This document shows positions 6,862 through 62,213 of a stretch of DNA of 64,000 bases, in pieces; the stretch's first letter is position 1; the number at the start of each line of letters is the position of its first letter. The DNA lies in contig NC_000964.3 of assembly GCF_000009045.1 (NCBI RefSeq), positions 1,116,001 through 1,180,000 of the forward strand, written 5' to 3'. The stretch is from Bacillus subtilis subsp. subtilis str. 168. Lineage in GTDB: Bacteria; Bacillota; Bacilli; Bacillales; Bacillaceae. A model generated the notes under the pieces. The model searched no databases, was not told where the DNA came from, and was given only the letters and a program-made list of their open reading frames with translations. Made by a program: the position numbers and the translations under genes.

Positions 6862-8361
6862 ATGATGATGAAATATGAAGCAGTGATTATAGGAGGAGGG
6901 CCGGTTGGATTTATGCTGGCTTCTGAGCTTGCAATAGCCGGAGTGGGAACATGTGTGATTGAACGGCTTGAAAAACCTGTTCCGCATTCCAAGGCGTTGA
7001 CGCTGCACCCCCGAACGCTGGAGCTTCTTGAGATGAGAGGGATTTTAGAGCGGTTCGTATCCAAGGGAAGCAAGATACCTACCGGACATTTTTCAATGCT
7101 GGATACCCGTCTGGATTTTTCAGGCTTGGATACGAGCTGTCCTTACACGCTTTTGCTCCCGCAGTCCAAAACAGAAAAGCTTCTTGAAGATCATGCACGA
7201 AGCCTGGGAACAGAGGTGTTTCGGGGTGCCGAGGCGCTGGCGGTTACGCAAAACGGGGAAGCGGTCCAAACAATTTTTAAGGATCGGGACGGCAGTGTAC
7301 GGACGATCACAAGCAAGTTTGCCGTTGGGGCAGATGGCGCCGGGAGTACCGTCCGGAAACAGGCGAAAATTGAGTTTCCGGGAACAGACAGCACTGTCAC
7401 CGCTGCGCTTGGGGATGTGGTGCTCCTTTCTCCGCCGCCGTCAGGTGTGCTGTCCCTTTGCACAAAAGAGGGCGGTGTTATGATTGTTCCGTTATCTCCA
7501 GACCGATACCGTGTCGTTGTGATCAGCCCTTATCGCACACAAACGCCGAAAGATGTGCCTGTGACTGAGGAAGAGCTGAAAGCTGACCTCCTGCGAATTT
7601 GCGGAACTGACTTCGGTTTAACCGACCCTTCGTGGATGTCGCGGTTTGGGAACGCCGCGCGCCAAGCGAAACGGTATCGGGACGGCAGAATCTTTCTTGC
7701 GGGTGATGCCGCGCATATTCATTTTCCGGCGGGCGGGCAAGGACTGAATGTCGGCCTTCAGGATGCAATGAACCTCGGGTGGAAACTGGCGGCGGCCATC
7801 AAAGGCTCTGCGCCTTCTTGGCTTTTGGACAGCTACCATGATGAGCGGCATCCGGCAGCGGAAGGGCTCCTCAGAAACACGGAGGCACAGACAAAGCTGA
7901 TCGATTTCACTCAAGCAGGCCTCCATTTGCGAAGCATGATGTCGGAGCTGCTGGCCTTCCCTGATGTGAATCGATATGTAGCGGGGCAAATTTCTGCGCT
8001 CGATGTCAGATATGAAGCTGATCGTACCATGCCGCCGAATCGTTTGAACGGGGCAAGGCTCCCTGACATGAAGCTGATTCTTTCCGACGGCAATTCGGAA
8101 CGGCTGTACAGCTTTCTCCAAAACGGGACATTCGTTTTGCTGTCATTGAGGCAGGAAGCTGATGATCATATCGAAGTAAAAGGCTTACGTACGGTAACCG
8201 CCTCGCTTGCAGAACCGAATGAAAAGTTGCGGAATGTGCATACCATATTGATTCGTCCCGATGGACATGTAGCCTGGGCGGTGGATGCATCAGCGCCCGA
8301 TTGTTCCGAGGTGATTCAAAAAGGGATCAGCCGCTGGTTTTCCGTCACCAGCCGAGTATAA
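6862..8361 (+). CDS. yhjG: FAD-dependent aromatic-ring monooxygenase (499 aa)
   Basis: GGGPVG FAD motif, GADG..S.VR, LAGDAAHIHFPAGGQGLNVGLQDA. Confidence 0.92.
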   Translation: MMMKYEAVIIGGGPVGFMLASELAIAGVGTCVIERLEKPVPHSKALTLHPRTLELLEMRGILERFVSKGSKIPTGHFSMLDTRLDFSGLDTSCPYTLLLPQSKTEKLLEDHARSLGTEVFRGAEALAVTQNGEAVQTIFKDRDGSVRTITSKFAVGADGAGSTVRKQAKIEFPGTDSTVTAALGDVVLLSPPPSGVLSLCTKEGGVMIVPLSPDRYRVVVISPYRTQTPKDVPVTEEELKADLLRICGTDFGLTDPSWMSRFGNAARQAKRYRDGRIFLAGDAAHIHFPAGGQGLNVGLQDAMNLGWKLAAAIKGSAPSWLLDSYHDERHPAAEGLLRNTEAQTKLIDFTQAGLHLRSMMSELLAFPDVNRYVAGQISALDVRYEADRTMPPNRLNGARLPDMKLILSDGNSERLYSFLQNGTFVLLSLRQEADDHIEVKGLRTVTASLAEPNEKLRNVHTILIRPDGHVAWAVDASAPDCSEVIQKGISRWFSVTSRV

Positions 8362-12314: not shown

Positions 12315-13611
12315 GAAACAGTCCCTCCATTACTCTGTCTTGTTCTTCTAAAGTAAATGACGGATATAAAGGCAAATGCAGTACCTGACTATGAGCCTTT
12401 TCCGTATGAACCAATTGGAGTCCTGCATACTTGTCCTGTACTAAAGGAGTTTTTTGCATATGAGAAAGTATTGGATAATATACATCTGTTTGAACACCAA
12501 AATCTTCATTTAATTTAGTCATGATATCTGCCCTATCTTCTGTTCTTACCTTAATAGGAAACAGATGCCATACATGATCTTCACTTAATTCTGGTAATTC
12601 AATATAGCCTTTATTCTGCAACTCTGCTAATTGGGTAATGTATCTATCCGCCAAGAACAATCTTTTGAAGTTGTTTAATGAAAGGTACTTCATTCTCTCT
12701 AAACCAATTGCTGCCTGTAAATTGTCCATTTTTGAATTAAATCCAAAATTGATGACTTTCTTATTTTTTACATTTACTTCAAAACCGTGATAACTAAATT
12801 GAATGCATTTTTTAGCGAGTTCTTCATTATCAGTTGCTATTGCCCCAGCCTTGCCACATACACCAAAATTCTTATAGGGATTAAAACTTAATGTAGTGAT
12901 GTCTGCATACTTTCCTAAGTCTGTCAGTCCAATTCCTTGGCAGGCATCTTCAATTACTTTTAATTTATAACGATTTGCGATTTGACGGATATGCTGCATG
13001 TCTGAATGTTTTCCGTATAAATGCACAGGTAGAATAAACTTTGTATAAGGAGTTATTGCTTCTTCAATTTTGTCAGGATCGATGCAGAATGTTTGTGGGT
13101 TAATATCTACATAGATAGGAACGCCTCCCGAAGCTAACACAGCATTTTCAGTAGCTGAAAAGCTATTAGCCGGCATGATAACTTCATCCCCTGGGTTTAA
13201 CCCTAAAGCCAATAAACCTATCATAATAGCATCGGTTCCACTGCTGGTTGCAATTACATACCTTTTATGTAAATATGTAGATAAAACTTTTTCGAATTGC
13301 TCTAAATAGGGACCACTCGTAAATTTTCCAGTTGGCAAAACTTCAGTTAATGTATTTAAGATATCTTCCACTTCATCATTGGTTATTAATCTGTCTACAG
13401 GCAAAAAAGGGACTTTACTGATTTCACGATTTTTTTGATAGTTGAAAAGGTCATGTTCAATATCTATCTTTTCTTTTAATACTTGTTTCCACCGCTCGTT
13501 TACAATACTGTCTTCAATAACAAGTTCTTTTCCTTGTACGTCACCTTTTAAGTGTTTTAATAGTGACATGTTTTCTTTGCTTTTACCTGAAATCTTAACC
13601 TGTTTTTGCAT
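12286..13611 (-). CDS. ntdA: 3-oxo-glucose-6-phosphate:glutamate aminotransferase NtdA (DegT/DnrJ family)
   Basis: SSGTDA, EDACQ, LSFNPYKNFG (PLP lysine). GGAGG RBS. Confidence 0.95.
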   Translation of the reverse strand: MQKQVKISGKSKENMSLLKHLKGDVQGKELVIEDSIVNERWKQVLKEKIDIEHDLFNYQKNREISKVPFLPVDRLITNDEVEDILNTLTEVLPTGKFTSGPYLEQFEKVLSTYLHKRYVIATSSGTDAIMIGLLALGLNPGDEVIMPANSFSATENAVLASGGVPIYVDINPQTFCIDPDKIEEAITPYTKFILPVHLYGKHSDMQHIRQIANRYKLKVIEDACQGIGLTDLGKYADITTLSFNPYKNFGVCGKAGAIATDNEELAKKCIQFSYHGFEVNVKNKKVINFGFNSKMDNLQAAIGLERMKYLSLNNFKRLFLADRYITQLAELQNKGYIELPELSEDHVWHLFPIKVRTEDRADIMTKLNEDFGVQTDVYYPILSHMQKTPLVQDKYAGLQLVHTEKAHSQVLHLPLYPSFTLEEQDRVMEGLFHVIKQEIGV

Positions 13612-13659
13612 GAACAGTACCTCCAATGATTTTATAATCTAAAAATTTATTACAAATTT

Positions 13660-49958: not shown

Positions 49959-50007
49959 CAGCATGCCCCCTTTTCTAAGAAATTCGTTTTTTTCATCTGT
50001 TTCTCCT

Positions 50008-50619
50008 TCAATTGCAAAAGAGTGACACCCCAAAATATCCTGCCGCTGCCCACATTACCGCTGCAGAGCATTTGTTTACGATCAGCATAAGCCTGCCGCT
50101 CGTATCTATCGTCTGAAACAACCGGCCCGCTATTGCAAGGCTGATGAACCAAATCCAAGACACAGCGATGCAGGCGGCCATAAAGAGCCATTTCTCAAGC
50201 CCCGAATATTGAAGAGAGCTCGTGCCGATGACGCCGATCGTGTCCAGAATGGCATGCGGGTTTAAAAGAGAAACAGCGGCCGCAAACGCAGCTTGCTTTT
50301 TTGGTGTGAACGTATGTTTCTCATTTTGGCTTGTGTTCGGACGGATGTTCCAAGTCACCCAGCCCATATAAAGCAAAAATAAAAATCCGCCGGCCATCAT
50401 GACTGTCTCAAACACAGGCAGCTCCTGCACAATGACAGACACGCCCGCAACGGCTAATACAATTAACAAGGTATCGCAGACTGAAGCACTGATGACAGCT
50501 GGGAGAGCCCGCCAAATATGCTTTTGCAACGCGCCTTGCTGAAAAATAAACACATTCTGCACTCCCAGCGGCAAAATTAAGCCAAACGCGAGCACAATTC
50601 CGTGAATGATTGCATTCAT
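50008..50619 (-). CDS. yisU: LysE/ArgO-family amino-acid exporter
   Basis: [35 protein letters not shown]. Confidence 0.9.
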
Positions 50620-50678
50620 GCTGAAAAAGCTCCTTTCACATTTTTTTTCAATCATAAGAGAGATTGTCACTAAAGTCT

Positions 50679-50719
50679 CCAGCCATTTGGTTGGGTTAGG
50701 AACCAGCCAAATGTATAAT
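50679..50719. promoter_or_regulatory. MocR-type operator array and yisV promoter
   Basis: CCAGCCA (50679), TGGTTGG (50688), CCAGCCA (50703); TTGGGT-N17-TATAAT. Confidence 0.65.
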
Positions 50720-50736
50720 GTGTAAAAAAGGGGGGC

Positions 50737-52191
50737 ATGACCTTGTCGCAATGGCAGCCAAGCCGAAAGTCGGATGTTCCGCTGCATCGGCAGATCGAAC
50801 AATATATGAAAGACAAGATTCTTCACGGAGAGTGGGCTGTAGGGACGAAAATCCCCTCACAGAGAACGCTGGCCGACATGTTTCAAGTCAACCGCAGCAC
50901 AGTCACAGCAGCCATAGATGAACTCACGTCTCAAGGCTTGTTAGAGGGAAGAAAAGGCGGCGGTACGAAGGTTGTAAACAGTACTTGGAGCGTGCTGACG
51001 GCTGAGCCTCCGCTTGATTGGAGCGATTACGTCCGTTCGGGCATTCATCGCGCCAATTCTTCCATCATTCAAGCTATTAATCAGAACGAACCAAGAGCGG
51101 ATATCATCAGATTAGGAACTGGAGAACTTTCACCGGATCTTGTGCCTGCTGACACAATTGGACGGATGTTTCAGCAAATCAATCCGGGCGTCCTGTCTTT
51201 AGGATATGAGCAGCCGAAAGGAAACCGTCAGCTGCGGGAGGCAGTGGCCGACCATTTAAAAGGAAAGAAGATCCATGTGTCACCGTCTGCAATTTTAATT
51301 GTGTCCGGTGCACTTCAGGCACTTCAGCTCATCTCAATTGGACTTTTAAAACGAGATTCTGTCATTTTGACGGAGAAGCCGTCCTACCTTCAATCCTTGC
51401 ATGTATTTCAATCAGCTGGGATGCGGCTTCGCGGCTTGCCGATGGATGATGAAGGGGTCAAAGCGGGGCTTGTTTCTTCTAATCGAAAACAATATGGAGG
51501 ACAGCTGCTTTACACGATTCCGTCGTTTCATAATCCGACAGGCACAGTCATGTCAGAGCAGCGAAGGAAAGAGATCATCAGCCTGTCAAAAAAAGAGCAG
51601 ATGCCCATCATTGAGGATGATGCGTACGGTGATTTATGGTTTGAAGAAAAACCGCCGCAGCCGTTGAAAGCAATGGATCATGAGGGCAATATTCTGTATC
51701 TGGGCGCGTTTTCAAAAACGGTTAGCCCCGGTCTGCGAATCGGCTGGCTTGCCGGTCCGGAGCCGGTTATTGAAAGGCTGGCGGACATTAAAATGCAGAC
51801 AGACTACGGATCAAGCGGCCTGTCCCAGTGGGCGGCTGCCGAGTGGCTGTCACAGGGATATTATGAAGAGCATCTGACTTGGGTACGCAGGAAGCTTAAA
51901 GAAAGGAGAGACGCCGCCGTTCATTTTCTCGAGCGGTATGCCGGGGACATTGCCACGTGGCGGATTCCCGCAGGCGGCTTTTATATTTGGGTGACATTTC
52001 ACAAAAACCTGCCTGTCAGCCGTTTCTTTTATGAATTGCTGAAACGGCAGGTGCTTGTGAATCCCGGCTATATTTATGACGGTGAAGACCGAAACAGCAT
52101 CAGGCTGTCATATTCCTATGCATCTCTTGGAGATTTGGAAACTGGCATTAAAGCGGCAGCTGAAACAGCACGCCGCCTGATGATGTCCTAG
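50737..52191 (+). CDS. yisV: MocR/GabR-type PLP-dependent GntR regulator
   Basis: GntR HTH (IPSQRTLA...VNRSTV) plus aminotransferase domain (IIEDDAY, FSKTVSPGLRIGW). Confidence 0.93.
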   Translation: MTLSQWQPSRKSDVPLHRQIEQYMKDKILHGEWAVGTKIPSQRTLADMFQVNRSTVTAAIDELTSQGLLEGRKGGGTKVVNSTWSVLTAEPPLDWSDYVRSGIHRANSSIIQAINQNEPRADIIRLGTGELSPDLVPADTIGRMFQQINPGVLSLGYEQPKGNRQLREAVADHLKGKKIHVSPSAILIVSGALQALQLISIGLLKRDSVILTEKPSYLQSLHVFQSAGMRLRGLPMDDEGVKAGLVSSNRKQYGGQLLYTIPSFHNPTGTVMSEQRRKEIISLSKKEQMPIIEDDAYGDLWFEEKPPQPLKAMDHEGNILYLGAFSKTVSPGLRIGWLAGPEPVIERLADIKMQTDYGSSGLSQWAAAEWLSQGYYEEHLTWVRRKLKERRDAAVHFLERYAGDIATWRIPAGGFYIWVTFHKNLPVSRFFYELLKRQVLVNPGYIYDGEDRNSIRLSYSYASLGDLETGIKAAAETARRLMMS

Positions 52192-52198
52192 GCTTTGG

Positions 52199-52837
52199 TT
52201 ATACGATGACAGCTCCCAGTGCCCTGGCGAAGGCAATCGCGTGCTCAGGTGCGATTTTGCAGCCTTTCAATTTGTCGAGGGAGACATGAAGCTGTTCAAA
52301 ACGGCACGTGCTGATGTCCATGTTTTGAAGGGACGTGCCGGTAAAGCTGGCGCCTTCCAATTCGCATCCGTCAAAGTGTGTCTGCTGGAGCACCGTATCG
52401 CTGCATTCACTTTGCATAAGAGCACAGTGATCAAATCGAACTTGTTTCATATTTGAGTACGAAAATGAGCTGAAATGTCCGTGGCATTCCTCGAATGAAA
52501 CATTCCGCAGCGTTGCTTCCGCCACATTCATTCCAACCATTTTTGACTGCTTAACTGAAGTTCTGTGAATGACAGCCCCGCTGAAATCGGCGTTTGATAA
52601 ATCGCATTTTTCAAAGATCACATCGGTCAGTTCAATATGCCGAAAAGACACATCGATAAAGACGACATTTCTGAATACCGTTTTTTCAACACATAGTCTT
52701 TCGATATCTTCGCCGCAGATGGTGCAATCTTCAAACAAATGCATGCTGATTACATCATCCTGTGTCACGGCATCATGAAAATCTGCGGTTTGCAGGTTTT
52801 CCGGTATGTTCGGTTTTTGAATTGCGATTTTATTCAT
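52199..52837 (-). CDS. yisX: Pentapeptide-repeat protein (212 aa)
   Basis: Tandem [STAV][DN][LF]xx repeats (CDLSN ADFSG, ATLRN VSFEE, ASFTG TSLQN). Confidence 0.9.
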   Translation of the reverse strand: MNKIAIQKPNIPENLQTADFHDAVTQDDVISMHLFEDCTICGEDIERLCVEKTVFRNVVFIDVSFRHIELTDVIFEKCDLSNADFSGAVIHRTSVKQSKMVGMNVAEATLRNVSFEECHGHFSSFSYSNMKQVRFDHCALMQSECSDTVLQQTHFDGCELEGASFTGTSLQNMDISTCRFEQLHVSLDKLKGCKIAPEHAIAFARALGAVIV

Positions 52838-53042
52838 GTGATGACATCCTTTGCTGCCCGAAAAACAGAGGCTTCCGGGTTCAATTTAATAGATCGTTAA
52901 GGAAATTGATACATATAGTAAATCGTGAAGAGCCTTTTCTTGGTACAGCAGCCCGCTTGTTTTGTAAGCATAAATGGAAAGCTTCCTATACGTCAAGGCG
53001 TTTACAGGCCGAAAAAGCCAAAGGGAACAGGAGGAATGCGGA

Positions 53043-53849
53043 ATGGGGCATTACATCAAAACCGAGGAGCATGTGACACTGTTTGTAGAGGATATCGGAC
53101 ATGGAAGGCCGATCATCTTTTTGCACGGGTGGCCGTTGAATCATAAGATGTTTGAATATCAAATGAATGAGCTTCCGAAAAGGGGATTTCGTTTTATCGG
53201 CGTTGATTTGCGGGGATATGGGCAATCTGACCGCCCTTGGGAAGGCTACGATTATGACACGATGGCCGATGATGTGAAAGCAGTCATTTATACGCTGCAG
53301 CTTGAGAATGCGATTCTTGCCGGTTTTTCAATGGGCGGCGCAATTGCAATCCGTTATATGGCAAGGCATGAAGGAGCCGATGTTGATAAGCTGATTTTAC
53401 TGTCTGCGGCGGCCCCCGCGTTTACAAAACGCCCGGGTTATCCGTACGGGATGAGGAAGCAGGATATTGACGATATGATTGAATTGTTCAAAGCTGATCG
53501 GCCCAAAACACTGGCTGATTTAGGGAAACAGTTTTTTGAGAAAAAAGTGTCTCCAGAGCTTAGGCAGTGGTTTCTCAATCTGATGCTGGAGGCTTCCTCC
53601 TACGGGACGATCCACTCGGGCATCGCATTAAGAGACGAAGATCTCAGAAAGGAACTTGCTGCAATCAAGGTGCCGACGCTGATCCTGCACGGGAGAAAGG
53701 ATAGAATTGCGCCGTTTGATTTTGCGAAAGAATTGAAGCGCGGCATCAAACAGTCGGAATTGGTTCCGTTTGCAAACAGCGGGCACGGAGCATTTTATGA
53801 GGAAAAAGAGAAGATCAACAGTTTGATTGCGCAGTTCTCCAACTCATAA
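53043..53849 (+). CDS. yisY: Alpha/beta hydrolase, non-haem haloperoxidase-like
   Basis: HGWPL, DLRGYGQS, GFSMGG nucleophile elbow, HG..D, SGHG. Confidence 0.92.
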   Translation: MGHYIKTEEHVTLFVEDIGHGRPIIFLHGWPLNHKMFEYQMNELPKRGFRFIGVDLRGYGQSDRPWEGYDYDTMADDVKAVIYTLQLENAILAGFSMGGAIAIRYMARHEGADVDKLILLSAAAPAFTKRPGYPYGMRKQDIDDMIELFKADRPKTLADLGKQFFEKKVSPELRQWFLNLMLEASSYGTIHSGIALRDEDLRKELAAIKVPTLILHGRKDRIAPFDFAKELKRGIKQSELVPFANSGHGAFYEEKEKINSLIAQFSNS

Positions 53850-53850
53850 G

Positions 53851-53878
53851 AAAAAACCCGACATTGATCGGGTTTTTT
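53851..53878. terminator. Bidirectional terminator between yisY and yisZ
   Basis: AAAAAACCCGA-N6-TCGGGTTTTTT. Confidence 0.9.
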
Positions 53879-54476
53879 ATATAATTCCTCTGTTTTGCAG
53901 TGCGTTAATGATGAGATCAGCTCCATCGGAAATAGAGGTCTGGTCAGACTCAATGATGAAATCGGGTGAAAGCGGCGCTTCATACGGAGAATCGATCCCG
54001 GTGAAATGTTTGATCTCTCCGTTTCGCGCTTTTTTATAAAGCCCTTTTGGATCGCGCTGTTCACAAACATGCAGCGGGCACTTCACATAAATTTCGAAGA
54101 ACTCACCTTTAGGAAAGAGCGCTCTAACCATGTCCCGATCCTCTCTGAATGGAGAAATAAAAGCCGTTAAAATCATTTGCCCGCTGTCGACAAACAGCTT
54201 CGCCACTTCTCCGATCCGGCGGATGTTTTCAATCCTGTCACCAGTCTGAAATCCAAGATCTTTGTTTAAGCCGTGGCGGATATTATCACCGTCAAGCACG
54301 TAGCTCTGAATGCCCTTGCGGTAAAGCTTTTCATCGACAGCATTGGCCAGCACCGATTTTCCGGAGCCGGACAAACCTGTAAACCAAAGGACGCAGCTTT
54401 TGTGTCCGTTTAAGGACTGTCTGTCAGACTTTGAGATGGCAGCGGGATGCCAAATGATGTTCGGATTGTGTGTCAT
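53877..54476 (-). CDS. yisZ: Adenylyl-sulfate (APS) kinase, CysC paralogue
   Basis: [33 protein letters not shown]. Confidence 0.95.
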
Positions 54477-55642
54477 TGCAATTCCCCGCTGTTTTGCTTG
54501 ATGGCAACAGGCTGTTGGTGAAGTCCCTTGATCAGCACGGCTGCGACCTCAGGCCGGCTGAATTCTTTAGGCGGCTTTTTGCCTTGGCGGAGAAGCTCTC
54601 TCACTTTTGTGCCTGATAAGTGGATGTGGTCTCTCGGGCTGTGCGGACATGTTTTGGAGGTGCCCATGTTTCCGCATTTTCGGCAATAAAAGCTGTGCTC
54701 AAAAAACAGCGGCTTGATGCCCAGCTCTTCCTCTGTGAATGATTGAAAAATATTTTGGGCGTCGTATGTTCCATAGTAGCTGCCGACACCCGCGTGATCA
54801 CGGCCTACAATAAAATGGGTACAGCCGTAATTTTTTCGGACGAGCGCATGGAAAATCGCTTCCCGCGGACCTGCATAACGCATGGCGGCAGGGAAAACCG
54901 ATAACATGACACGATCCTTTGGATAATAGTGATTAAGCAAAGCCTGGTAGCTCTCCATTCTGATATCGCTGGGGATATCGTCTGACTTTGTTTCTCCGAC
55001 AAGTGGGTGAAGCAGCAGACCGTCGACCGTTTCTAACGCTGTTTTTTGAATGTATTCATGCGCTCTGTGAACAGGGTTCCTGGTTTGAAAGCCGACAATC
55101 GTCTTCCAGCCGAGTTTTTGAAAGGCCGCTCTTGTTTCAGCGGGCGTTGCATAAAACTGTTCGAAAGATTTGTCAGGCAGGCTGCTGACCGTGATAGGCC
55201 CTCCGATATAGTAATCCGGGCGCGCCAGCAATTTTTTTACGCCTGGGTGGGCAGGATCGTTTGTTTTAAAAACAGACAGTGCTTCTTGTGTTTTATCAGG
55301 CTGGTATATATCGGTGACTGTGATCATGCCGTAGGTAACACCGTCTTTCACAAGCTTGACGTGATCTCCGGCAGACAGCTGTCTTGCTGTTTTTTCTCCG
55401 ACAGGCAGCGTAATCGGCAGGCTCCACGGCAAGCCGTTTGCCAGCCTCATCTCTTTCACAACGGAATGATAATCTTTTTCTCCCAAAAAACCTGTTAACG
55501 GGCTGTAGCCGCCGATCGCAATAAGCTCCAGATCACTCAGTGCAAGCTGATCCAGCTCTGCTTGGCACGCGCACCCTTCAAAATGGCATGCGGGATCACA
55601 GCGGTTGATTAATACCCCTCCGTGGGGTTCGTTTCCATTCAA
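54473..55642 (-). CDS. yitA: Sulfate adenylyltransferase, Sat paralogue
   Basis: [36 protein letters not shown] start 9 nt after GGAGG. Confidence 0.95.
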
Positions 55643-55754
55643 CGTGTTCAACCTCCATTTATACGTTTCCTTGTTTTCTTTTCTGCACTTAATGAAAGTT
55701 TGACATCAGCGCCTTAACATCATTTCGATTCTCACATCAAGAACCTGCCATCCG

Positions 55755-56465
55755 CTATTCTTGATGCAGGCCGCATTCTGTTTTCTCCCGTCCGGCCCAT
55801 CTTCCAGCCCTCTCATCGTTCGGGTCCGGGGAAGGCAGTGTACACATTTCACAGCCTATGCTCGGATAATGTTGATCGTGCAGTTTGTTATAAGGCAAAT
55901 TGTGCAGGCGGATGTACGTCCAAACGTCATCCCATGTCCAGTGGATAAGCGGGCAAATTTTGATGAGCTCAAACTTCTGGTCCAGGTTTACGTATTGAAT
56001 ATGCTTTCTCGTTGGTGACTGATCCCGGCGCAGTCCTGAAATCCAAGCTGTCATGCCGGACAGGTGCTTTTTGAGCGGTTCGATTTTCCGCAATTGGCAG
56101 CAGAGGTTCGGGTTATGCTTCCACAGCTCTCCGCCGTACTTCGTCCCCTGTTCTGTTAAGCTCAGCTCGGGTTCGAGCATCTGGATTGCAAATCCCGGAT
56201 ATCGTTCTTTGACGGTCTCGATCAGCTCATATGTTTCCTGAAAATGAAGCCCGGTATCCAAAAAGATGATGTGTGCGTTTTTGTTGATTTTTGATATTAA
56301 GTCGAGAAGCACCATTCCTTCTGCGCCAAAGCTGCAGGCGTACACAATCTTTTCTCCGTACGTTCGGTAAGCCCATTTCAACACATCGAGCTCATCGATC
56401 AATTGATCCGTTATCTGTTTGGACAGCATGTCGTTCCAAGTGTCATATGTGATGGTTTCGTTCAA
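55755..56465 (-). CDS. yitB: APS/PAPS reductase, CysH paralogue with Fe-S ligands
   Basis: SFGAE, CCQLRK.EPL, SIGCEMCT, ECGLH. TTG start. Confidence 0.94.
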   Translation of the reverse strand: MNETITYDTWNDMLSKQITDQLIDELDVLKWAYRTYGEKIVYACSFGAEGMVLLDLISKINKNAHIIFLDTGLHFQETYELIETVKERYPGFAIQMLEPELSLTEQGTKYGGELWKHNPNLCCQLRKIEPLKKHLSGMTAWISGLRRDQSPTRKHIQYVNLDQKFELIKICPLIHWTWDDVWTYIRLHNLPYNKLHDQHYPSIGCEMCTLPSPDPNDERAGRWAGREKTECGLHQE

Positions 56466-56649
56466 TGTTTTCCCCCCGTTTGCATCTGCTTTTTTTATCT
56501 ATTGATCGAGTTATAGGCAGACTATTCATTTTTTGCATAAAGGTTCAGGTTTTAGGTGCCGCGCCCGCCTAAAATGAGGTGCGGAACCATTAAGAGCCCG
56601 GCTGAATATGCTTTTTAGCAAAATGGTTTTATGCCCAAGGAGAGGTAGT

Positions 56650-57336
56650 ATGCCGATTGCCATTTATCAGGGGCATCATCATTCGCTTGCCCCGGCGGAC
56701 ATTAACATCGTCATTGATGTCATCAGAGCCTTTACGGTCGCCCATTATGCGTTTATCGGCGGGGCGAAAGAGATTTTGTTGGTCCGGACAGCTGATGAAG
56801 CCTTTGCGCTGAAAGACACCTATCCGGATTATGTTTTGACGGGAGAGGAAAAGGGGGTCGGTATCAGCGGATTTGATTTAGATAATTCTCCAAAACGTAT
56901 GGCTGGGCAGAATATGACGGATAAAAGCCTGATCCAGAAAACAACAAACGGCGTCACAGCAGCATTGGGGGCGCTGAACGCAAAGCATCTGTTCGTAACT
57001 GGATTTTCCAATGCCAAAACAACGGCACAGCATGTGAAAAAGCTCGTCGCAAACGATTGTGTCATAAACATAGTGGCTTCCCATCCATCCGGTGATGACG
57101 ATATGGCATGTGCGGAGTATATCAAAGGCATCATTGAAGGGACAAATGTGGTAACGGCTGCGGAGGCGATTGAAAGAATAAAAGGCTCTTCTGTTGCGGA
57201 GAAGTTTTTTGACTGCCGCCAGCCATTGTTTGATTCGGAAGACATCGTTTACTGTACAAAAGAACTGACGGGCGATTTCGTGATGAAAGTGAAACAAGAT
57301 GGAGAAGTTCCAACGATAGAGAGGGTCATAATATGA
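56650..57336 (+). CDS. yitC: 2-phosphosulfolactate phosphatase (ComB-like)
   Basis: IDVIRAFT, GE..G....GFD..NSP, TTNG, DD.ACA. GGAGAGG RBS. Confidence 0.9.
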   Translation: MPIAIYQGHHHSLAPADINIVIDVIRAFTVAHYAFIGGAKEILLVRTADEAFALKDTYPDYVLTGEEKGVGISGFDLDNSPKRMAGQNMTDKSLIQKTTNGVTAALGALNAKHLFVTGFSNAKTTAQHVKKLVANDCVINIVASHPSGDDDMACAEYIKGIIEGTNVVTAAEAIERIKGSSVAEKFFDCRQPLFDSEDIVYCTKELTGDFVMKVKQDGEVPTIERVII

Positions 57337-58091
57337 ATGATTTTTCACTAGAATTGCCAGTGAGAACAAACAAGCCGAGAGAAACCGGGCAGTCCATTTT
57401 AATTGATAACGGCTATCCCTTGCAATTTTTCAAAGATGCGATAGCCGGAGCGTCCGACTATATTGATTTTGTGAAATTCGGCTGGGGCACATCATTACTT
57501 ACGAAAGATCTTGAAGAAAAAATCAGCACACTGAAAGAACATGACATTACATTTTTCTTTGGCGGCACACTGTTTGAAAAGTACGTAAGCCAGAAAAAAG
57601 TGAATGAATTTCATCGGTACTGCACCTATTTCGGCTGTGAATATATTGAGATTTCAAACGGTACGCTCCCGATGACAAATAAAGAGAAAGCGGCTTACAT
57701 TGCCGATTTTTCTGATGAATTTCTTGTGCTCAGTGAGGTGGGCAGCAAGGATGCGGAATTAGCAAGCCGGCAAAGCTCTGAGGAATGGCTTGAATATATC
57801 GTTGAGGATATGGAAGCGGGCGCGGAAAAAGTGATTACAGAAGCCAGAGAAAGCGGAACGGGAGGGATCTGTTCCAGCAGCGGCGATGTCAGGTTTCAAA
57901 TTGTTGACGACATCATTTCCTCGGATATTGATATCAACAGGCTGATTTTTGAAGCGCCTAACAAAACGCTTCAGCAAGGGTTTATTCAAAAAATCGGGCC
58001 GAATGTGAATCTTGCCAATATTCCATTTCATGATGCCATCGCGTTGGAAACGCTGCGTTTAGGGCTAAGATCCGATACCTTTTTTCTGTAA
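57333..58091 (+). CDS. yitD: Phosphosulfolactate synthase (ComA-like)
   Basis: KPRETG, DFVKFGWGTS, IEIS.G, SEVG.K, VITEARESG, FEAP, GP.VNLAN. Confidence 0.92.
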   Translation: MNDFSLELPVRTNKPRETGQSILIDNGYPLQFFKDAIAGASDYIDFVKFGWGTSLLTKDLEEKISTLKEHDITFFFGGTLFEKYVSQKKVNEFHRYCTYFGCEYIEISNGTLPMTNKEKAAYIADFSDEFLVLSEVGSKDAELASRQSSEEWLEYIVEDMEAGAEKVITEARESGTGGICSSSGDVRFQIVDDIISSDIDINRLIFEAPNKTLQQGFIQKIGPNVNLANIPFHDAIALETLRLGLRSDTFFL

Positions 58092-58135
58092 AATAGCGGC
58101 TGCGGGGCTCTCGTCGTGAAGAGAGCCTCTGCCTA

Positions 58136-58837
<702 letters not shown>

Positions 58838-58860
58838 TCAAAATAAAGAAATGGCCCAGC

Positions 58861-59976
58861 TTAATAGGCTGAGCCATCCCACTTGTAGCGATTGACGATC
58901 TCCATATTGATCTCTGTGCCAATGCCTTTTCCTTTCGGGATGTGGACCATTCCTTTTGAAGGCTGCAGGCTGACGAGATCTGTAAAAGGATTCTCCATGA
59001 CGTCCCACTCGATCGGTTCAATGTGATCGTTCTTCATTTTAGACCATGGGGGCAGACAGGCTTGTGCAAATAAAGCATAGAGCCGTGAGAGCGATCCGTC
59101 ATATGCATGGGCGGATGCTCTGACGCCGAAATAACGCGCGAGCTGGAGGCAGTCCCGAAACTCATCAATTCCGTTGACATGCATGACATCGGGCTGAATG
59201 ATATCCAAACAGCGCTGTGAAAGGAGAGGCACATATTGCGCCGGGCCTTTCATGTTTTCTCCGCCGGCAACAGGAACAGACAAACGGCTTCGAAGCATAG
59301 CGTAATCCTGCGGCTGATCAAAGGGCAAAGGCTCCTCAAGCCAGCCAATGTTCGTCCATTCGGAGAAATAGCGCTCCCATTTAAAAGCCGCAGCGGCATC
59401 GTAGCTTTGGTTTGCGTCCAGAATCATCGTAATGGAGCTGCCTGCTGTATGCTGCAGCGCATTGATGTGCCGGACATCCTCCTTGAATGAAGTCCCGCCA
59501 ATTTTGACTTTGATTTGCTCAAAACCTTTTTTCAACTGGGCTTCAACATTGGAGACTGAGCGGCTGATCCATTGCGGGGAGTCTGAGTACGATTGAAAAG
59601 ACGCGTACACAGGAATCTCCTCTCTGTATCGCCCGCCCCATAATTCGCAAACCGAACAATCCGCAGCTTTGGCTGCAATCTCTGTCAGCGCCATGCTTAC
59701 AGCGGAGGCCGCCCGCTGGTGCCATTTTTGAATCGTGCGCACTAATGACAGGCGGCTGCCAGCCTGTTTTCCTAATAGAAATGGGATGATCCGCTTCGTA
59801 AAACCGACATGGAGAGCAGGGAGCCAATCAACGCATTCTCCCCAGCCGTCTATCCCGCTTTCGGTGATAATCCTGATGAGATAACAAGTCCGATATCGTT
59901 TAAACCCATTGGCATCTCCGTATGGCTTTTCTAATCGATGAAATAGCGGAAAGGTTTCAATCCGTACAATTTTCAC
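58861..59976 (-). CDS. yitF: Enolase-superfamily (mandelate racemase/MLE) enzyme
   Basis: KxK (IKVKIG), metal ligands D (LDAN), E (LEEP), E (GGEN), His base (SAHAYD). Confidence 0.92.
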
Positions 59977-59984
59977 ACTGGGTG

Positions 59985-61253
59985 CTACCTTTCCTCAGCG
60001 GGCTGGAGCCGATTGCCAGCCATTTTAGGGTCTTCTTTTTCTTTTGTTTCTTCATTGTTTTGCTTCACATGGATGAGCATCATCACAAGAATCCCGACAA
60101 CGAGAGTCAATCCCGCGATGCTTAAAAACATGCCGGGTCTGGACCATTGCATCAGGCGGCCGAAAATCGGAGGACCGATCGCTACCCCTAAGAAACGTAC
60201 AGAGCCGTACAGCGAGGTGACAAATCCCCGTCTTTCTTTGCCGACAGCCCCGGTAATGAAACTGTTCACACAAGGAAGGACAAGACCTGAGCCTATACTG
60301 CTCAGTACAAGAACACTGATAAAAAGGACAAGATTTTCAATGAATGACAGTGCCGCGTAGGATACGGTCATGAACGCCAATCCAAGTACGATCAGCTTTT
60401 TCATTAACGATTGCTTTTGCCCGATTTTGCTTCCTGTTGTATAGGACGTCACACACATAACCAAAAGCGGGATCGCTAAAATTAAGCCTTTTTTCACGCC
60501 GTCGGTGTCGTATGTTTTTTCAAGAACATCTGAGAGATAAAACAGGATGCCGAATAAAGTAAACAAACAGGTCGCACCGGCTAAATAAGCGGTAAACAGC
60601 CATCTGCCTTCATGTTTAAAGACACTTAACAGCCCTTTTGCATATTGTCCGATTGGTGGCGGTTCTTTTTCCTTTTTCTTTTCTTTAATAAAAATCCAAG
60701 TCAGTACGATCGAAATGATACAAAACACAGGAAAGGCAAAAAACGCGCCATACCAGACAAGCAGGGCGATCAGCGAGCCAATGATCGGCGATAGCACTTT
60801 CCCCATGCCGTTTGAAGCTTCAACAAGGCCGAGCACCTTGCTCTCCTGGGCGCCTTTAAACAGATCTCCCGTCAGTGCCATGGCAATTGGGCCGGTTCCG
60901 GCTGCCCCGATTCCCTGTAACGCTCGTCCTGCCATGACCCAAGGATAGGCATTGTCAAAAAAACCTGCCGCAAACCCGGCTAACAAACCGCCGGCACCAT
61001 ACAAAATTAAGCAGGGAATAATGATGACTTTCCTTGAGAATCGGTCTGCGAGATAACCGACAATCGGAATCGCAAATGCTGCAATCAAGGAAAATACTGT
61101 GATCACGAGACTGACTTGAAATTGTGATAAATGAAGTTCAGATTTCATTTTTGGCAAAATCGGAATAAGCATCGAGTTTCCTAGGGTTAATATTAAAGGG
61201 ATTGAACCGATTGCCACAATCGTCATTCCGTTATTTTGTTTTGATGATTCCAT
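59985..61253 (-). CDS. yitG: MFS transporter
   Basis: [10 protein letters not shown] motif A, GRALQGIG; 12 TM. AAGGAGTG RBS. Confidence 0.92.
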
Positions 61254-61323
61254 CTCAGAGCACACTCCTTTTCTTCTGCTTAGAATGTCCCTGATGGCTT
61301 CGTTTATTCAGCGATCAGACAGC

Positions 61324-61352
61324 AAAAAACCGAACAGAAGATACCTGTTCGG
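61324..61352 (-). terminator. Terminator after yitH
   Basis: CCGAACAG-N7-CTGTTCGG with a U-tract on the minus strand. Confidence 0.8.
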
Positions 61353-61364
61353 GAAAAAAGAGGG

Positions 61365-62213
61365 TTAACCGAGAGCCTGTGAAATCAAAGCATATAAGTG
61401 TCCATTTTGAATAGGCGCTTTTTTCTGATAGAACAAAATCGGAGGTTCATCATCTTTATGAAATCCCATTTCTATCAGGCTGTCATGCAGAGACGTGTGT
61501 TCACTCGGTATATCGATTCGCATCGGCCCTTGTTTGCCGGCCGCCAGCCTTGTAATTATCTGTGCTGCAACATCTGATGATGGAGCGATGATAGGGCCGA
61601 ATTTCAAATTGGCCGGTGTCTGTACAGAAAGTCCGTAGCCAATGAGCTGTCCGTCCTGATTTCTGGCGATGATACATTCGCATGAAGCAGAAATAAGCTG
61701 CTGCAAAAGGTTTGATCGATCTCCGCCAAAGGCAGCCAGATCCGCCGCGGTTAAGTCGTGAAAGTCTTGTTCTCTAAAGGATGTCAGTTCAGCATCAAGC
61801 TTTTTTGTATAAGGTTGAAAACTGTGACAGCTGTACTTTCGCACTGAACCTGCCGTATGAAAACCTGCTTTTTCATAAAGCGGCAAACCTTCTTTTGTGG
61901 CGCAAAGCCTGATGGCGGTGTTTTCATCCGTTTGGGTAATACAGGCGTTTACCATACGCCGGCCAAGACCGAGCCGTTGATATTCCTTGTCAACGATAAC
62001 AAGGCCGATAGAAGTAAGACGGCCAAACAAAAACAAGCCGATGCAGGAAATAATATCACCGCTGACATTTTGATAACCGAAAAAGCGTCCCTGCTGAACA
62101 AGCAGTTTCAGCTCTTGTTCGCCATAATCCGGCCACCCGGCTTGCCCGCAAAGCCGCAATAAGCCGGAAACGTGTTCTTCATGAAGCTTAATCAGTTCAT
62201 CTACTACGTCCAT
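61365..62213 (-). CDS. yitH: Tandem-GNAT N-acetyltransferase (282 aa)
   Basis: V..EYQRLGLG acetyl-CoA motif, LYEKAGF. Confidence 0.88.
   Translation of the reverse strand: MDVVDELIKLHEEHVSGLLRLCGQAGWPDYGEQELKLLVQQGRFFGYQNVSGDIISCIGLFLFGRLTSIGLVIVDKEYQRLGLGRRMVNACITQTDENTAIRLCATKEGLPLYEKAGFHTAGSVRKYSCHSFQPYTKKLDAELTSFREQDFHDLTAADLAAFGGDRSNLLQQLISASCECIIARNQDGQLIGYGLSVQTPANLKFGPIIAPSSDVAAQIITRLAAGKQGPMRIDIPSEHTSLHDSLIEMGFHKDDEPPILFYQKKAPIQNGHLYALISQALG

Follow-up and report, generated by a model that had tools for sequence, protein, structure and literature searches.

The DNA under study (hereafter the window) is a 64,000-nucleotide stretch of the Bacillus subtilis subsp. subtilis str. 168 chromosome (NC_000964.3, positions 1,116,001 to 1,180,000 of the forward strand), and this report concerns its yit locus at window positions 53877-58091, a predicted cluster for sulfolactate synthesis. 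The locus consists of five intact open reading frames (ORFs) in two divergent groups, yitB-yitA-yisZ on the minus strand and yitC-yitD on the plus strand. yitB (55755-56465, -; 236 amino acids, aa) encodes a predicted thioredoxin-dependent [4Fe-4S] sulfonucleotide reductase of the adenosine 5'-phosphosulfate (APS) type, the likely sulfite producer. It is followed by yitA (54473-55651, -), a Sat-type ATP sulfurylase gene of 392 aa as the longest ORF, whose real start possibly lies a few codons inward, and by yisZ (53877-54476, -; 199 aa), the APS kinase gene that ends the operon. On the other strand yitC (56650-57336, +) encodes a homolog of the ComB-family 2-phosphosulfolactate phosphatases and yitD (57333-58091, +; 252 aa) a predicted ComA-family (2R)-phospho-3-sulfolactate synthase. 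Four-nucleotide overlaps (ATGA) between yitA and yisZ and between yitC and yitD suggest translational coupling within each pair. This divergent layout and the family labels, given in the original prediction made from the sequence, were confirmed by the coordinates and by profile matches. The GC content of the region is not unusual, and sequence databases already annotate the system along the predicted lines.

The longest yitC ORF begins at ATG 56608, and mechanical ORF calling thus lengthens the gene by 14 codons (56608-56649). A second ATG at 56650 is preceded by the ribosome-binding site AAGGAGAGG. Since the published transcription start site, mapped by 5' rapid amplification of cDNA ends (5'RACE), lies downstream of ATG 56608, we placed the yitC start at 56650. 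This start leaves a divergent gap of 184 bp, one less than the 185 bp first given.

Two mapped promoters stand back to back in this gap. The sigma-K promoter of yitBA-yisZ occupies 56519-56546 (-), with the -10 box GAATAGTCT at 56519-56527 and the -35 box GAACC at 56542-56546. The yitCD promoter, which is sigma-K dependent with a weak sigma-E component, occupies 56584-56612 (+), with the -35 box GAACC at 56584-56588 and the -10 box GAATATGCT at 56604-56612. Both were defined by published 5'RACE, and the published boxes of both operons match the window sequence exactly. The yitC 5'RACE start site was identical with and without sigK (Eichenberger et al., 2004; PMC517825). The supplementary tables of the same work give sigK+/sigK- ratios of 40.8 for yitB, 12.0 for yitA, 30.4 for yisZ, 27.8 for yitC and 11.9 for yitD, a weak sigma-E dependence of yitCD, and GerE ratios of 0.11-0.30, which indicate repression of both operons (PMC517825). 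The spoVF dipicolinate synthase operon behaves likewise in that table, being activated by sigma-K and repressed by GerE (PMC517825). Our generic consensus scan for sigma-K, -E, -G and -F promoters missed both mapped promoters in the gap because their -10 element uses GAATA instead of CATA; a scan of the gap (56466-56649) for sigma-70-type promoters gave no match. Between the two -35 boxes we read a perfect 7-bp inverted repeat, TTTTAGG-N11-CCTAAAA (56550-56574). Within the B. subtilis group its conservation is only partial, B. mojavensis and B. atrophaeus having lost the left half. Its half-sites resemble GerE boxes and both operons are GerE-repressed; the repeat is tentatively a putative shared operator, which we do not assert. 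Control by a riboswitch or leader was rejected, as no Rfam family matched in 50000-62000. Across seven loci of relatives the sole Rfam match was an unrelated cyclic di-GMP riboswitch about 9 kb away.

The three proteins of the minus-strand operon fall into sulfate-activation families. YisZ matches PF01583 APS_kinase (7.8e-73) and passes the equivalog-level model TIGR00455 (311.8 bits vs. a cutoff of 138.7). YitA matches PF01747 ATP-sulfurylase (1.9e-103) together with PF14306 PUA_2, the PUA-like N-terminal domain, and passes two equivalog profiles, TIGR00339 (448.2 bits vs. 322.95) and NF003166 (576.5 vs. 387). The profile search placed YitB in PF01507 PAPS_reduct (3e-63), and the finer models separate its substrate classes: YitB passes TIGR02055 APS_reductase (248.8 bits vs. 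a cutoff of 235.3) and stays under the cutoff of TIGR02057 PAPS_reductase (190.4 bits vs. 254.2), the model for reduction of 3'-phosphoadenosine 5'-phosphosulfate (PAPS). Its top structural matches in the PDB are the Pseudomonas aeruginosa APS reductase 2GOY (1.2e-46) and Mycobacterium tuberculosis CysH 7LHR. Both cysteine pairs of YitB (CC and CxxC) and its C-terminal catalytic ECGLH align with these two enzymes, whereas the PAPS-specific enzyme 7RGE has neither pair. Judged by these residues and scores, YitB is an Fe-S reductase of the APS type. Sulfite can therefore come directly from APS, and the APS kinase YisZ is not obviously required.

The plus-strand operon encodes the two enzyme families that make sulfolactate in the archaeal coenzyme M pathway. 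YitD matches PF02679 ComA over profile positions 2-243 of 243 (2e-84; 283.3 bits vs. a cutoff of 25.2) and is 100% identical to PDB entry 1U83, the phosphosulfolactate synthase of B. subtilis. It shares 44% identity over 232 aligned positions with the characterised ComA of Methanocaldococcus jannaschii (1QWG). Among 13 Bacillales homologs 84 columns are invariant, of which 1QWG keeps the same residue in 63, and the blocks KFGWGTS, GGTLFE, EARESG, FEAP and LETLR..LR.DTF are common to the YitD family and the archaeal enzyme. YitC matches the 2-phosphosulfolactate phosphatase profile PF04029 (4.5e-41; 140.9 bits vs. a cutoff of 26.4). Its closest PDB match is Clostridium acetobutylicum ComB, 1VR0 (1.3e-17), the crystal structure of which holds bound (2R)-3-sulfolactic acid; the conserved N-terminal motifs DxxRA, GE+KG, FDxxNSP and TTNG align between the two proteins.

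To place the locus among its relatives, we scanned one genome per species; a YitD relative turned up in 508 genomes. The 80 top-ranking loci, all from Bacillales, were taken with up to 10 kb of flank per side, and linkage was determined by tblastn with the window proteins; yitB adjacency and five-gene sets were counted in the 76 loci with enough upstream sequence. yitC stands immediately upstream of yitD in 68/80 loci. A divergent yitB homolog adjoins in 44/76, in at least 12 Bacillales genera besides that of the window, and this divergent arrangement is far beyond chance. The phylogenetic co-occurrence of the five genes, named as a check in the original prediction, was also found: the complete set is present in 34 of the 76 loci, covering at least 12 genera, and in 23 of the 65 outside the B. 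subtilis group.

Sporulation-type promoters follow the genes. The boxes of both promoters are unchanged in 10 species of the B. subtilis group, as far as B. atrophaeus. For the distant loci the whole B. subtilis group was left out, and the motif AC-N16-18-[C/A]ATAnnnT was sought within 200 nt upstream. This sigma-K-type motif was found upstream of yitC in 50/57 distant loci (mean of 7.2 and maximum of 15 in shuffled sequences) and upstream of yitB in 32/34 (shuffles, mean 4.3, maximum 10). The -10 boxes are near-identical from genus to genus, those upstream of yitC being of the GAATATACT type. By the published expression data, both operons belong to the sigma-K regulon of the late mother cell; the dependence on a sporulation sigma factor, also named as a check in the original prediction, agrees with both the mapped promoters in the window and the motifs kept across genera. 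Since linkage and promoter motifs are conserved together, these are features of the module as a whole and not peculiarities of B. subtilis.

The gene content of the relatives was examined for steps before and after sulfite. Not one of the 80 loci has a sulfite reductase gene or siroheme genes beside the operon, which usually stops at the kinase gene and is followed by a convergent gene. ComC, ComD and ComE are absent from the locus, its flanks and the conserved neighbors across the 80 loci. The lack of a sulfite reductase and of ComC/D/E, already read from the window, holds there for the cluster and flanks of about 4 kb. In about a dozen loci a 1.1-kb gene between yitA and yitB encodes a CysP sulfate permease, which matches PF01384 and passes the equivalog model NF053884 (505.7 bits vs. 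400). If genes lying next to yitCD are counted along with those between reductase and sulfurylase, a CysP-type gene occurs at L043:7215-8312 (-), L070:7246-8340 (-) and about 18 further loci. At L021, L029 and L035 a DASS/CitMHS-type anion permease gene follows the kinase gene; these 590-aa ORFs had been considered as sulfite reductase or siroheme genes, which was ruled out by this family assignment. Three conserved clusters (8, 11 and 12) were likewise rejected as genes, being antisense shadow ORFs inside yitD, cysP and yitG.

The system has been known as a prediction, together with its regulation, since 2002-2004. Both operons were assigned to phosphosulfolactate synthesis with late expression (Eichenberger et al., 2004; PMC517825, citing Graham et al., 2002), and the supplementary tables of that work list cysH, sat and cysC as high-similarity paralogs of yit genes (PMC517825). 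In B. subtilis spores sulfolactate accounts for 5% of dry weight, in agreement with the abundance stated in the original prediction, while spores of B. megaterium and B. cereus were without it (PMC517825, citing Bonsen et al., 1969); the B. cereus genome is without yitCD (PMC517825). The description of the locus as a candidate under-described system thus does not hold at the level of prediction, the route having been stated explicitly, with regulation data, by Eichenberger et al. (2004; PMC517825). The milder statement that the route had been proposed and not fully demonstrated is right in that neither an enzyme assay nor a metabolite measurement in mutants was found in the searchable literature, and falls short in that regulation had also been published.

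Taking the published and computed evidence together, we consider it quite probable that the locus is a late-sporulation module of the mother cell that makes 3-sulfolactate, a sulfonate of the spore. Earlier experiments established the two promoters, their sigma-K dependence and their repression by GerE, and showed that spores contain sulfolactate; the families, motifs, linkage and promoter conservation were computed here. We infer the reaction of every enzyme in B. subtilis, the use by YitD of sulfite made by YitB, and any passage of sulfolactate into the forespore. In the proposed sequence of events, sigma-K RNA polymerase would fire both back-to-back promoters and GerE would shut both later. 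YitA would adenylate sulfate to APS, and YitB would reduce APS, or possibly PAPS supplied by YisZ, to free sulfite with thioredoxin as the reductant. YitD would then add sulfite to phosphoenolpyruvate in a Michael addition that gives (2R)-phosphosulfolactate, from which YitC would remove the phosphate to leave (R)-sulfolactate. As no sulfite reductase is present in the cluster, sulfite would be the reductive endpoint and the substrate of YitD. With the housekeeping cysH-cysP-sat-cysC operon at another genomic site, the paralogous yit set would permit sporulation-timed sulfite production independent of the regulation of the cysteine pool. The earlier phrase of a complete, co-regulated route is accurate for co-regulation by sigma-K and GerE and for an intact enzyme family at each step; "complete" was an overstatement, as the locus has no sulfate uptake gene and no route into the forespore is known.

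Several observations weigh against this reading. YitD misses the NCBIfam equivalog model TIGR03849 (arch_ComA; 235.9 bits vs. a cutoff of 280) and YitC stays under the cutoff in all eight NCBIfam ComB models (top NF010700, 88.9 bits vs. 332), the cutoffs of these ComA and ComB equivalogs being derived largely from archaeal proteins. On account of these scores YitC and YitD are classed as members of bacterial subfamilies and not as archaeal equivalogs. Our search of the open-access literature turned up neither an activity assay of YitC or YitD nor a sulfolactate measurement in yit mutants; subscription journals, which lay outside the search, may hold such a test. The 2002 work of Graham et al. 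reportedly assayed the M. jannaschii enzyme, not YitD. Twenty-nine of the 76 loci have yitCD and no adjacent sulfate-activation genes, and a dedicated sulfite supply is therefore optional. The B. licheniformis group (L015, L017, L018, L022 and L024) has divergent yitB and yitD genes and no ComB-like yitC, and L020 and L079 show the same arrangement, so that at such loci another enzyme dephosphorylates the product or it remains phosphorylated. The APS kinase gene is kept in 38/80 loci though an APS-type reductase needs none. B. subtilis CysH takes both APS and PAPS, and for this reason YisZ may serve to broaden the substrate pool by offering PAPS beside APS. Expression in the mother cell means that sulfolactate in the spore core would need an import route into the forespore, and none was identified. 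Finally, the ancestral pathway may have ended in a product other than sulfolactate, as most relatives have an additional gene of the VOC fold (described below).

The yitBA-yisZ operon could instead be a sporulation-timed boost of sulfur assimilation, in which sulfite is reduced to sulfide and used for the cysteine of cysteine-rich coat proteins, the proximity of yitCD being incidental or loose. The close paralogy of the three proteins to CysH, Sat and CysC would fit this explanation, as would the cysH-cysP-sat-cysC order that the operon of relatives has in common with the housekeeping operon, and the 29 loci in which yitCD occurs without sulfate-activation genes. We nevertheless regard it as unlikely, given that divergent adjacency to ComA recurs in at least 12 genera with sigma-K-type promoters on both sides and that sulfite reductase and siroheme genes do not accompany the operon in the 80 loci.

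A second alternative concerns the end product. In 51/80 loci yitD is followed on the same strand by an ORF of 132 aa with a VOC/glyoxalase fold (PF00903, 5.6e-11), usually 12-54 nt past the yitD stop, as at L013:10774-11172 (+). The VOC protein is 59-84% identical between genera and at least 70% identical in all but two loci; for comparison, the YitD homologs have a mean identity of 62% to the YitD of the window. The gene is absent at the locus in the B. subtilis group, the B. licheniformis group, Domibacillus and Paenibacillus, and no VOC homolog was found in the 64-kb window. Its nearest solved structure is the unannotated structural-genomics entry 3RRI (9e-48). The family is small (824 clusters), with members of 132-133 aa that carry generic names only, and no B. 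subtilis-group ortholog was among the top 120 members. A member 71% identical in sequence lies directly after the ComA gene of Legionella londiniensis. There, at L081:5544-12963 and beside a transposase gene, the order is His_Phos_1 phosphatase, ComA, VOC, ATP-grasp, amidotransferase-like, transglutaminase-like and ATP-grasp, which looks like a small-molecule biosynthetic cluster; the phosphatase that precedes ComA is non-homologous to ComB.

The occurrence of a phosphatase-ComA-VOC triad in two phyla suggests that the ancestral product was not plain sulfolactate and that the B. subtilis pathway is a shortened one. It also suggests a reusable three-enzyme unit leading toward a sulfonate building block. 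We therefore put forward, tentatively and as a possibility somewhat short of even odds, that the B. subtilis locus is a reduced form of a wider sigma-K-type module of Bacillales that yields a VOC-modified sulfonate in most genera, sulfolactate accumulating where the VOC step is missing. Such a module would have a core of phosphatase, ComA and VOC enzyme, often with its own cysH-cysP-sat-cysC operon, plus a YitT-family membrane protein. Applied to B. subtilis itself, the same observations (the highly conserved gene right after yitD, and the pairing of ComA and VOC in the ATP-grasp/amidotransferase cluster of L. londiniensis) could mean that the product of YitCD is only an intermediate, the true product being a further-modified sulfonate and free sulfolactate a by-product or the outcome of a truncated pathway. 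This appears improbable: the B. subtilis group is without the VOC gene at the locus, in the window and among the top family members, ComC, ComD and ComE are not nearby, and the compound isolated from spores at 5% of their dry weight is sulfolactate itself. A third alternative, in which the main output is PAPS made by YitA and YisZ for sulfation of spore-surface glycans or proteins while YitB recycles the excess, is very improbable, for despite the APS kinase gene retained in 38/80 loci beside an APS-type reductase there is no sulfotransferase at the locus or among the conserved neighbors, and the reductase gene, which adjoins ComA, is kept more steadily than the other two.

The locus, read as a module for 3-sulfolactate, was compared with known systems. 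The archaeal coenzyme M pathway (ComA and ComB of M. jannaschii) uses the same two enzyme families from adjacent genes. The yit locus differs from it in having no ComC/D/E, in a proposed product that stops at sulfolactate, and in control by sporulation sigma factors; it is not a coenzyme M pathway, because ComC and ComDE are absent. In the bacterial coenzyme M pathway of Xanthobacter, the ComA homolog XcbB1 forms phosphosulfolactate from phosphoenolpyruvate and sulfite, and the phosphate is then eliminated by an enzyme of the aspartase/fumarase family and not hydrolysed by ComB; the yit locus has no gene of that family. The housekeeping cysH-cysP-sat-cysC-ylnDEF operon contains the paralogous reductase, sulfurylase and kinase, with a reductase of the same Fe-S APS-type class, and in the yit-type operons of relatives cysP likewise stands between reductase and sulfurylase. 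In contrast, the yit copy of B. subtilis is without permease and siroheme genes and is physically linked to the ComA and ComB genes. It is transcribed from a sigma-K promoter, in place of the vegetative or cysteine-responsive control of the housekeeping operon (for the cysH operon, which is not in the window, the details come from the table in PMC517825 and from general background). Like the yit operons, the spoVFAB dipicolinate synthase operon is sigma-K-dependent, GerE-repressed and devoted to an abundant spore solute; the chemistry is unrelated. Dipicolinate has an import machinery, SpoVV and SpoVA, whereas we know of no carrier for sulfolactate.

At about 5% of spore dry weight, sulfolactate is of an order of magnitude comparable to dipicolinate, and the assignment of its biosynthetic genes rests on homology and co-regulation. 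Five non-essential genes with two mapped promoters offer a clean genetic handle on the part this solute plays in dormancy, resistance and germination. The locus also bears on the question of what keeps a branch that generates sulfite separate from cysteine metabolism. The present analysis adds modest new leads, namely the conserved sporulation promoters, the accessory sulfate permease and the VOC enzyme whose gene goes with that of ComA in two phyla, the last of which concerns relatives and not this window.

The B. subtilis yit locus has no sulfate uptake gene. The original prediction had noted no permease, and this holds inside the five-gene cluster; the membrane proteins YitE and YitG are, however, encoded close by. 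yitE (58136-58810, -) lies 44 bp downstream of yitD, outside the core, and encodes a YitT-family protein with five transmembrane segments (PF02588, 2.1e-34). By published data it is sigma-E-dependent (ratio 33.7) and SpoIIID-repressed, with a SpoIIID gel shift. Its homologs occur near yitD in 35/80 loci. Those of yitG (59985-61265, -), which encodes a transporter of the major facilitator superfamily, occur there in 30/80, and in both cases order and orientation vary. From this linkage YitE is tentatively a candidate transport partner of the pathway, and YitG a possible one.

Two further neighbors were rejected as pathway members. yitF (enolase superfamily) and yisY (alpha/beta hydrolase) are linked to the locus in no groups other than those of B. 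subtilis and B. licheniformis, and yitF is not sporulation-regulated. The longest yisY ORF (52974-53849, +) is convergent to yisZ across a 27-bp gap, in which we saw no clear intrinsic terminator. The published array ratio of yisY is about 7, in a column that we presume to report sigma-E dependence.

In the draft genome of Bacillus stercoris (L001), the matches to yitA (7208-7939) and yitG (12656-13630) are shorter than their counterparts in the B. subtilis group, which could be due to frameshifts or to errors of the draft assembly. Fifteen loci also have a membrane protein gene of the DUF421/YetF family (PF04239 and PF20730) a few kb upstream of their yitD, for example at L015:6998-7750 (-) and L017:7881-8561 (-); proteins of this family have been associated with the inner membrane of the spore.

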